Origin: Styela clava
Lineage: Eukaryota
DNA: 64,000 nt
Reading direction: 5' to 3'
Assembly: GCF_964204865.1 (NCBI RefSeq)
Contig: NC_135261.1
Location: 18,848,001 to 18,912,000, forward strand
Of this stretch, positions 21,298-41,846 are shown in pieces. Both the position numbers and the translations under genes were made by a program. Position 1 is the stretch's first letter; each line of letters begins with the position of its first letter. The notes beneath the pieces are model-generated. The model saw only the letters and a program-made list of their open reading frames with translations. It did no database searches and had not been told where the DNA came from.

Positions 21298-24200
21298 ATG
21301 AATGGAAAATATATATGCACAGTGCTACTCGTGATATGTGTCTTTTTGACCCATTGCACAAATTGTTTAAAACAAGGTACGTTATTGCAGTTGTTGGCAT
21401 ATTAGCACCAACCCCAACCTGGTTGATTTTGAAAATTACCACACCGTTTGCCTCTAAAAAATTATTTAGTCATTTCTCAAAGTTGGAAATATACTTTTGC
21501 TGAAAATTGGGTTGTAATAATTCGAACTACCATGTAATTGATCAACATAATTATAATGTCGTGCTGCCTTTTCATGTATATTTGGTGAATATTGAGAGCA
21601 TCAGTACAATAATCGTTTGTGTATGGTATCGTTACTGTCAAATCTTTCCTGTATGTGAGAATTCAGTTGCTGAAGATATCGGCAAACAAGCATGACAAAA
21701 TAAAGTTTTCTCGTAATTTGAAAAAAACATCGAAACGTTGGGTGAAATCAGGGAAATTCGAAAAAAAAAACTTTTTTTTTTATCTTCAAGTACAGAAAAT
21801 TGAATAATTACTGAGCTGTGGCCGATGCTTTGCATGTTTTTATCGATACTTTTTTCCACATTTAAAGTAACTCAATAGGCTAGATCAGGCTTGGAGGCAA
21901 TTCATTTTGGTTCACACCAAAATTGCACAAAACCTAACTTAAATGCATTAAAGTCGTGAGAACTGCTCATAGCTAAGGTCAGCGGAACCGGAGTTTTCCA
22001 AAATTTTTGGGCCGCGGACTTCTGTTTGTGAATTTTAATTTTTACGTTCCCCCATTCTTTGCAGTATCAATTTATGTGCTTAACCAACGAGCAAAGATAA
22101 TGTTTCATTTACAACACAAGCGACAATAATCAAGGATCGTTCTAGAACAACTTTTTCACGGTGGATATACGTGTTTCAGGCTTTTTCAATATCATTGCTG
22201 ACCCCCTGTGTAGTCATCACCAACCCCTAGCGGACCCCAATTTGGGAAACCCTGAGATAAACATTTGAAATTCCTATTGAAGTAATATGAAATTAATTTA
22301 AATATTTAGTTGACCAGGAAATTCGAAAAAAGAGATCAACCTTCGGACGATGCAGATACAGTTCACCTTCTGGAATACCAGTGAAAAATCCATCACAAAC
22401 AAGAATCAAATTTTTACCGAACAGAGGTATTGCAGATAATTTATGTGGGATAGTATATATTTCAATTCAAATGCATTACATACTTATAGTTAAGCTTTGC
22501 TGATCTGTTTTATATGCACAAATATCCCAGATCTAGTATGTTAAAACTGCTGTAGTCATTCGTTCAATCCTATCACCATTTTATTCAAAATCTGTAAATT
22601 AGTCTTGTATTTTATATTTGAAAACCCCACAGAAATAAAAATTGTTTCTCTTTTAAGATGGAACAAAATACAATTACAACGAAGTACTTCATAAATCTAT
22701 ACTTTTCTACGAAGCGCAACGATCGGGTTATTTACCCAAAAATAATCGAATTCTTTGGCGAGGAGATTCGGGTCTGAAAGACGGATGCGATATAAAAGTA
22801 GACTTGACCGGTGGTTGGTACAATGGTAAGTTTATCATTCGATTAGCCCAGAAGAGTTCGAATGGAGTCGGAATTTTTGAGTTTGATTGTATTTGATTAT
22901 GCATATGTAAACTAGCTTACAGATGTCTTCCCAAAAATAAAAACCCTTATTGTTCAGAAAACTTAAAACCTTTCATCTGTAATTTAGACATTCAAGGAAG
23001 ATTCCAAAATTGTTTTATACCAATAAACTGTAATTTTAGAAATATATTCGTATGTTGAGCGCAAACTTCATTTATGTAGCAATTGATAAAAAAGTTGTGC
23101 CTGTTTTGTTTCTCAGCCGGCGACTTGATGAAATTCAATTTTCCGATGGCTTTCACATTAACAATGTTATCATGGGGAGGAATACAGTTTCGAGATGCAT
23201 ACGAAGATGCTGGGGAAATTCAAAATCTGATTCAAACAATCAAATGGGGAACAAATTACTTTATAAAATGTCACATATCAAAGTATGAGTTAGTTGGACA
23301 GGTTGGTAATATATTGCGATGCAACATCGATACTGTTTACTTAGATAGTGGCTGACTAAGCTAAAAATGAAGTTTACCTATATGCGGAAATACCTTTGTG
23401 TGATTCGATGTATTTAGGTATTGATATGAGAATTGAGTTGAAGTGCGCGCAGCGGTTGATAATGTCTGTATAGACAGACTAAAATGCGTGCCATAACTAG
23501 AGCTTAAAGTTTTATTTTTCTTTTCATTGTGATTCTTAATTACTTTACATATCATAAACAATAACTTTTTGTTTTAAATTTAAAGTGACTACGCAATACA
23601 AAGAACAACTGTACATTTTATTCATGGCTGTACTAAAGATTAAACTATAAATTGTTTTGGTCTTCATGCTATATTTGTATTTTTGAGTCCACTTTCATCT
23701 TGCATGCATGTAGATAGGACATGGAAAAACCGATCATGAAAATTGGGGAAGACCGGAAGAACTCAGCATATCAAGACCAACCCGTACAATCACTGCTAGA
23801 AAACCAGGCTCAGAACTTGCCGGTGAAACTGCTGCGGCATTGGCCGCATCCTCGATGTTGCTCGAGAAAGTAGACAAGAAACTGTCTGCCTCTGCACTTG
23901 ATCACGCGAAGGAATTGTTTGAATTTGCCGATAAGTACAGGTATTTAGAGTTCAACGTCTTTTTTCGATTTACGACTAAGTTTTAGTTTCCTCAATCCAT
24001 AGTCCACGAGGTTATTAGGTTATTAATTTTATAGAACATAATCCGCTAAATGCCGAAGGTGAAAACAGATCTTGGTAGGGTTGATCCTGGGCGCCTACCG
24101 GCTTGTCGATCTGTTTAGAACTAGTACCTCGGTTATCCTTTTCCCAGATAAATTTAGGTCAATCTGTTGTCTTTAATTAAGCAGTTTTCACCGCACCCTG

Positions 24201-41846: not shown

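Follow-up and report, generated by a model that had tools for sequence, protein, structure and literature searches.

What could be the role of a locus in which four cellulase domains of glycoside hydrolase family 9 (GH9) stand in tandem, and only the last one has a glutamate at the position of the catalytic acid? Such a locus occupies positions 21298–41846 on the plus strand of the window, by which we mean the whole analysed stretch of 64,000 nucleotides (C16:18848001-18912000 of a 377-Mb genome; AT-rich, about 33% GC). Positions given below without a contig name are those of the window. We consider it fairly probable that the locus is one gene for a secreted protein of about 2008 amino acids, made up of three pseudo-GH9 domains and one active domain, and that the clefts of the former bind glucan. 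What is shown is the anatomy together with the identity of the residues, the selection and the pattern of the paralogues; from these we infer the single transcript, the loss of hydrolysis, the glucan binding and the site of action. For brevity, a GH9 unit without Glu at the acid position is called dead.

Catalytic residues and selection

The reference positions are Glu412 and Asp54/Asp57 of the termite endoglucanase 1KS8, or Glu424 and Asp55/Asp58 of T. fusca E4, which we take to be the acid and the base pair, respectively, of inverting GH9 enzymes. The acid-region motifs of domains 1–4 are found on the plus strand at 25971, 30528, 36088 and 41102, in the last GH9 exon (exon G) of each unit. 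The alignment of this exon is ungapped around the acid region. The residue on Glu412 of 1KS8 is Gln in domains 1, 2 and 3, encoded by CAA at 25977–25979, 30534–30536 and 36094–36096, respectively, and Glu in domain 4, encoded by GAA at 41108–41110. Further, the last exon of domain 4 aligns without gaps, over 63 residues, to animal single-domain GH9.

A phase-1 intron interrupts the base motif. The last residue of exon A falls on Asp54 of 1KS8 (Asp55 of E4), and exon B opens with Gly-Asp on residues 56–57 (57–58 of E4); the spliced reading is NAGD, DGGD, AGGD and DAGD in domains 1–4. The Asp-x-x-Asp pair is complete in domains 2 and 4; the first Asp is lost in domains 1 and 3, and the second one is kept in all four, as are the HHR and H..W motifs. 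The preliminary description of this locus had given Q, Q, Q and E at the acid position and the same four base motifs, and both readings are borne out by the codons, by the splicing and by the alignment to 1KS8.

Domain 4 has retained the three catalytic carboxylates and is, of the four domains, the only one likely to be an endo-beta-1,4-glucanase; by its sequence it qualifies as a GH9 endoglucanase. Domains 1–3 are GH9 by fold signature and lack the catalytic acid; they are classed here as pseudo-GH9 modules. An (alpha/alpha)6 barrel is implied by the alignment to solved GH9 chains. Among environmental GH9 relatives (48 loci found with exon 3G as the query, using a pattern that excludes the acid position), Glu stands at the acid position in 47 of the 47 readable cases.

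Loss of catalytic residues is what one would see if domains 1–3 were functionless passengers, or if the whole locus were a decaying pseudogene. However, all 34 exons of the gene model are open and have canonical splice sites, despite saturated synonymous sites: the proportion of synonymous differences (pS) in pairs of window domains is 0.73–0.80, and the nonsynonymous divergence (dN) is 0.27–0.32. The ratio of dN to the synonymous divergence (dN/dS) could be computed for a single window pair, domains 2 and 3, where it is 0.10. Out of 59 alignment columns that are invariant in 13 Glu-bearing GH9s, domain 1 keeps 55, domain 2 keeps 58 and domain 3 keeps 57, the lost ones including the first catalytic Asp. 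In the IQ-TREE phylogeny of the GH9 units of this genome, the terminal branches of dead units (0.33–0.36) are as long as those of active relatives (0.33–0.36).

A second estimate comes from a three-unit paralogous locus on the minus strand of C1 (C1:15774000-15798500; L014, L017, L076). It reads pre + GH9 three times, the "pre" being a short exon in front of each GH9 unit, and then has one Pro/Lys-rich tail. Its first pre exon is preceded, at a distance of about 4.3 kb, by a good signal-peptide exon. In units U1 and U2 the acid position is His (CAT), the second Asp is gone and HHR is replaced by THK; unit U3 is intact. The two dead units, U1 and U2, are 79.5% identical, with dS of 1.0 and dN/dS of 0.11 (bootstrap 0.08–0.16). 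Domains 1–3 are maintained by purifying selection and are not decaying, as the preliminary description had supposed from their open frames, splice sites and retained cleft motifs (H..W, WD and HHR). The passenger or pseudogene explanation is highly improbable. The domains match the definition of a pseudoenzyme, having lost a catalytic residue with the remainder under purifying selection.

A separate possibility is that domains 1–3 are still enzymes, with another proton donor, a substrate whose leaving group is good, or an altered specificity. Domain 2 indeed keeps both Asp and all but one of the invariant columns, and natural glycosidases that are active with Gln in place of the acid exist in other families, e.g. 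plant myrosinase. On the other hand, domains 1 and 3 have also lost Asp55 (E4 numbering), and the sister units on C1 have further lost the second Asp and the histidines of HHR while dN/dS stayed at 0.11. Since the dead C1 units lost more catalytic residues at this dN/dS, selection on binding or fold, and not on catalysis, fits the data. In domains 2 and 3 a Glu occurs three residues upstream of the Gln, which the preliminary description had noted as a caveat. We rejected it as a relocated acid: the upstream Glu is also present in active paralogues that have the true one, hence it is a feature of the clade and neither a substitute acid nor a compensatory change. Retained catalysis in domains 1–3 is, in our opinion, decidedly unlikely.

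One gene or four

In building the gene model, exon cores were set by coordinates, and frame-keeping GT/AG pairs were enumerated and scored against the animal GH9 protein P0070. The exons were joined from the window coordinates by a script, and external searches were run exon by exon. The spliced model has 34 exons on the plus strand, from the ATG at 21298 to the TAA at 41844–41846, and all its introns are GT–AG. The coding sequence of 6027 nt has a single terminal stop, and the predicted protein is 2008 amino acids long. An exon for the signal peptide comes first; it is followed by four copies of a cassette, each made of a short pre exon and seven GH9 exons, and then by a single Thr-rich basic tail exon with the only stop. 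This plan agrees with the preliminary description, which had one signal peptide, four tandem GH9 domains and one stop.

The six-frame search of the genome with the PF00759 profile yields four complete exon sets in the window, at about 22.7–26.0k, 27.0–30.6k, 31.5–36.1k and 37.1–41.1k. In each unit the exons match the hidden Markov model (HMM) from position 1 to about 443 except for about 276–347, and all of these matches are above the curated cut-off. The HMM gap at about 276–347 is filled by exon E, which was placed using the frame, the splice sites and the alignment to paralogues and other GH9s. By this profile all four units are GH9 members over the whole catalytic domain. The same seven exons A–G occur in all of them with identical intron phases (1, 0, 2, 0, 1, 2) and, for exons A (168 nt), B (185 nt), C (227 nt), E (136 nt) and F (175 nt), with equal lengths across the four units. 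Every pre+GH9 cassette is of phase 1-1. By simple arithmetic, a stop is expected about every 13 codons at the base composition of the window, and about 475 open codons per unit have a probability near 1e-16. Chance is excluded because of this value, together with the Glu at the acid position in all 47 readable environmental relatives.

Exon 1 (21298–21376) contains the start codon and the signal peptide, that is, 26 amino acids and a split codon, and ends at the phase-1 donor AAG/GTACGT. The pre exons, 117–138 nt long and all of phase 1-1, contain a conserved module of about 25 amino acids with one Cys, ending in F.PN, and are the only parts of the between-unit gaps that can still be aligned to each other. 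In both multi-unit loci, in the window and on C1, a basic stretch opens the first pre exon. Thr/Pro-rich starts, as are typical of linkers between domains, are found in pre2, in pre4 and in both internal pre exons of C1; the start of pre3 is weaker, being a short Ser/Ala/Pro/Gln stretch.

The pre1 exon (22310–22426) has RKKR in its basic stretch, followed by the conserved module. Domain 1 (22658–26022) consists of exons 22658–22825, 23117–23301, 23714–23940, 24239–24452, 24551–24686, 25174–25348 and 25832–26022. The pre2 linker exon (26736–26867) is followed by domain 2 (26936–30612), with exons 26936–27103, 27624–27808, 28166–28392, 28826–29039, 29335–29470, 29565–29739 and 30389–30612; its last donor is moved by +30 nt, and phase 1 is kept. 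The pre3 linker exon (30837–30974) has an alternative acceptor at 30849. Domain 3 (31434–36139) is formed by exons 31434–31601, 33226–33410, 33522–33748, 34138–34339, 35130–35265, 35345–35519 and 35946–36139, and pre4 (36875–37006) leads to domain 4 (37131–41153), with exons 37131–37298, 38019–38203, 38275–38501, 39157–39364, 40095–40230, 40454–40628 and 40963–41153. The product of the tail exon (41620–41846) is rich in Thr at first and in Lys/Arg towards its end, where there are two Cys, and the exon closes with the TAA. Directly 3' of this stop there is an AATAAA at 41850–41856, which fits the 3' end of a gene.

One further piece, 36691–36804 on the plus strand, lies inside the intron before pre4 and outside the 34-exon model. 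It is phase 1-1, has usable splice sites, 53% GC and a GC-rich first half, and encodes RTRSKR. It may be an optional linker exon or a product of chance. No homologue of it was found in any other gap or at the paralogous loci, and we did not accept it as a firm exon; it is kept as a possibility.

The predicted protein has no recognisable carbohydrate-binding module (CBM), as the preliminary description had implied. In the Pfam search of the non-GH9 parts, no family of any kind was found in pre1–4 or in the candidate exons at E-values up to 0.1, and the tail and pre3 yielded weak unrelated matches only, with E-values of 0.1 and above, far below the cut-offs.

Do these exons belong to one gene? 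The argument is comparative and relies on gap scans, paralogous loci and splice phases. The gaps between the units were scanned for pieces that begin with ATG, encode a hydrophobic stretch and end at a phase-1 donor. The signal exon at 21298 was recovered as a control (hydrophobic-window score 3.76), and no comparable signal-peptide-like exon was found in any of the three gaps between units. One of these, from domain 2 to pre3, is only 224 nt long. In tblastn searches, the signal and tail exons are each present once in the window and have no homologue in the gaps. At C1:15.77M and at C2:31.26M, a homologue of the tail exon is found only after the last GH9 unit; the latter locus is a single-unit gene with the order pre + GH9 + tail. 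The paralogues on C17 and C1 keep the phase-1 donor directly behind the ..AVAG codon, hence the last GH9 exon is never terminal in this family.

GH9–GH9 fusion is seen elsewhere in the genome without any splicing. The locus C2:29034300-29040500 (L011) has two GH9 units and few introns. A stop-free frame of 260 codons at C2:29037846-29038625 (L011:6847-7626) takes in roughly the last 90 residues of unit a, about 30 linker amino acids and roughly the first 120 residues of unit b, and thus the fusion exists there in a single open frame.

The alternative is four separate tandem GH9 genes, or an operon resolved by spliced-leader (SL) trans-splicing at the acceptors of the pre exons, with each unit ending at a nearby stop. 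In-frame stops do occur 6–12 codons past the ..AG codon of every last GH9 exon, and operons and trans-splicing occur in tunicates. However, the donor after ..AG is conserved family-wide and, in the single-unit gene, leads to the tail exon. Units 2–4 lack a signal-peptide exon and a tail exon, and none of them has an in-frame start from which a secreted product would arise; therefore, if the units were separate, the last three would have to lack a signal peptide. The 224-nt gap, the Thr/Pro linkers at the internal pre exons, the same plan at C1 and the splice-free fusion on C2 also speak for a multi-domain protein.

One result of the database searches speaks for separate genes: no multi-GH9 protein is seen among the best 150 library matches or the 47 environmental relatives. 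Exon 4C, compared with 1.84 billion cluster representatives, gave matches of at most 62% identity over the full exon, and one 60-residue fragment at 72%. Among the best 150 matches none had several GH9 stretches in one protein, except for one moth protein with 12 short stretches, which were taken as low-complexity matches without inspection. Exon 2B, searched in its open frame, has no near-identical homologous protein, and the protein search with exon 1G gave no candidate. None of the environmental loci shows more than one GH9 start motif. On balance we regard separate genes or an operon as unlikely, and predict, with considerable confidence, that the four GH9 domains belong to one gene with one signal peptide and one stop.

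Paralogous loci and the origin of the array

The two-unit locus on C2 is dead throughout: Lys occupies the acid position of both units, a and b. Unit b continues into a long Thr-rich, mucin-like tail. The Logan-derived sequences P0189 and P0190 are 65–69% identical to the C2 dead unit, with Arg at the acid position and the same mucin-like tail, hence dead GH9s are conserved beyond this genome. Within it, the acid position lacks Glu in 10 of the 20 GH9 units where it is readable, and is Gln, His, Lys, Ala or Ser. The unusualness that the preliminary description ascribed to several GH9 domains in one animal protein is therefore to be qualified. The literature search found no report of animal multi-GH9 proteins or of GH9 pseudoenzymes, its coverage being incomplete and no proof of absence, but the genome itself has at least two more multi-GH9 loci and many dead GH9 units.

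The survey also revealed GH9 units of other kinds. Three nearly identical canonical GH9 genes (NEVA, DxGD) are situated about 15 kb apart at C6:13932000-13966400 (L021–L023). This arrangement indicates a recent segmental triplication; neither a pre exon nor a tail exon was detected for the trio. Divergent, long-branch GH9 units are found at C8:16.92M, 17.08M and 20.01–20.02M, at C2:14.88M and at C3:6.07M (L019, L020, L024–L027). In several of them the acid position is Ala or Ser, or the base motif is altered. Their crude exon extraction contains many stops, which may be explained by bad boundaries or by decay.

In the IQ-TREE phylogeny, the pre exon is common to nine units, which form a clade (support 100/98). 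Within this clade, domain 4 of the window is the sister of the active unit U3 of C1 (92/89). All five dead units of the clade, namely domain 1, the pair of domains 2 and 3, and the pair U1 and U2, form one group, with support 94/91 in the full data set and 83/88 in the reduced one. The acid codons form the series GAA, CAA, CAT.

The simplest history consistent with these trees would be as follows. A single-unit gene would have duplicated its cassette, and the upstream copy would have lost the acid once, by a change from Glu to Gln. The resulting two-domain gene would then have been duplicated, giving the loci on C1 and C16, and at each locus the dead cassette would have been amplified again. 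As the cassette is of phase 1-1, internal tandem duplication preserved the frame.

Proposed function and known systems

At C9:16177457-16180164 the genome has matches to Cellulose_synt (GT2) and GH6, 2 kb apart on the same strand, which is the arrangement of the tunicate cellulose synthase CesA. The GT2+GH6 arrangement is unique to tunicates among animals (PMC10334666). Hence the host is a cellulose-making tunicate, in line with the cellulose-making animal of the preliminary description. In Oikopleura dioica, the GH9 genes are expanded, and some of them are reported to be active in the house-making epithelium (bioRxiv 10.64898/2026.03.31.715263). In their first 400 residues, O. dioica GH9s from the same source resemble the units described here: they have Thr-rich linkers, then a short Cys-containing segment before the GH9 start, a very similar exon-A motif and, in some members, altered base motifs.

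Our proposal for the window protein is that domains 1–3 no longer hydrolyse beta-1,4-glucan but may hold single glucan chains in the cleft. The three dead clefts would form a multivalent cellulose-binding arm that positions the live domain 4 on tunic or house cellulose. Alternatively, the array might cross-link glucan chains in this cellulose. The basic tail may anchor the protein to an anionic matrix.

The basic residues allow for another scheme, in which the product is a precursor, a polyprotein in the strict sense. Cleavage at basic sites in the linkers would free the dead GH9 modules, as soluble binders or competitors, as well as the active enzyme. The RKKR of pre1, the dibasic or R..R sites that immediately precede the conserved Cys of pre2 and pre4, and the RTRSKR of the piece 36691–36804 are what such a scheme would use. 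However, the RKKR before domain 1 is the only strict R-x-[KR]-R site in the 34-exon model, with none between the domains, and the piece encoding RTRSKR is a candidate exon without a homologue. We consider processing of this kind rather unlikely, somewhat less so than separate genes.

The reading of the locus as one gene with glucan-binding dead domains has its own difficulties, and the following points weigh against it. Replacement of Glu by Gln alone is no proof of zero activity in domains 1–3. The support for the dead clade is moderate (83–94), and a tree in which the four window units are constrained to one clade is worse by 12.5 log-likelihood units, with a borderline p = 0.048 in the approximately unbiased (AU) test. 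The 34-exon model is a prediction, and extra or alternative exons, e.g. 36691–36804, are possible. Finally, the database searches with exons 4C, 2B and 1G did not find a near-identical protein or cDNA fragment, and no orthologue of the four-unit gene was found in another species.

A broader interpretation, which we offer tentatively and hold to be possible rather than probable, is that the dead GH9 domain is a new tunicate cellulose-binding module that evolved from the animals' own endoglucanase and is used in arrays as a secreted cellulose organiser. Under the same tentative interpretation, the arrays would be three dead units and one active unit in the window, two and one on C1, and two dead units with a mucin-like tail on C2. 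If this is true, nascent or amorphous glucan chains would be held in several dead clefts and trimmed by the one live domain, and the system would be the extracellular equivalent of the cellulases that partner plant and bacterial cellulose synthases.

Little is understood of the way in which tunicates, the only animals that make cellulose, shape, cross-link and remodel it; studies have so far focused on CesA and GH6-1. A conserved secreted family with several silent GH9 clefts and one live one would supply concrete candidates, open to testing, for the missing factors that organise the matrix. It would further offer a clear natural example of an enzyme domain turned into its own binding module via internal duplication, and the dead domains could serve as single-chain cellulose probes.

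The window protein may be compared with several known systems. The termite NtEgl (1KS8) and the earthworm and other invertebrate GH9 (3WC3, 8IHW) share with it the full-length PF00759 match, and domain 4 has their DAGD and Glu at Asp54, Asp57 and Glu412. Known animal GH9 enzymes have a single catalytic domain, with or without a CBM, whereas here the predicted protein has four GH9 domains, three of them without the acid Glu, together with pre/linker exons and a polybasic tail. The plant GH9 enzymes of the KORRIGAN type, which PMC10986139 mentions, act on the organism's own cellulose and not in digestion. The proposed setting here is similar in this respect, but KORRIGAN is a single, active, membrane-anchored domain. 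Among the bacterial multi-catalytic cellulases, Caldicellulosiruptor CelA (GH9-CBM3-GH48) combines several glycosidase modules on one secreted chain with Thr/Pro linkers. All its modules are active, belong to different families and have true CBMs between them, while the repeats considered here are of one family, mostly inactive and without a CBM.

Two cases are closest in concept. In the GH18 chitinase-like lectins (e.g. YKL-40 and the insect IDGFs), the acid is replaced, the fold is kept under selection and the cleft is reused for glycan binding. They differ from the present case in family, fold and ligand, and each is a protein by itself, with no array and no fusion to an active copy of the enzyme. 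The other case is the catalytically altered GH6 of tunicate CesA, reported to lack the active-site Asp (PMC10334666). It is likewise a cellulase-type domain with a lost catalytic residue that is retained in the tunicate cellulose machinery; however, it is GH6 and not GH9, is present in a single copy and is fused to the GT2 synthase in a membrane protein. Pseudo-glycosidase modules reused beside an active one are a known kind of system, of which the GH9 array is a variation.

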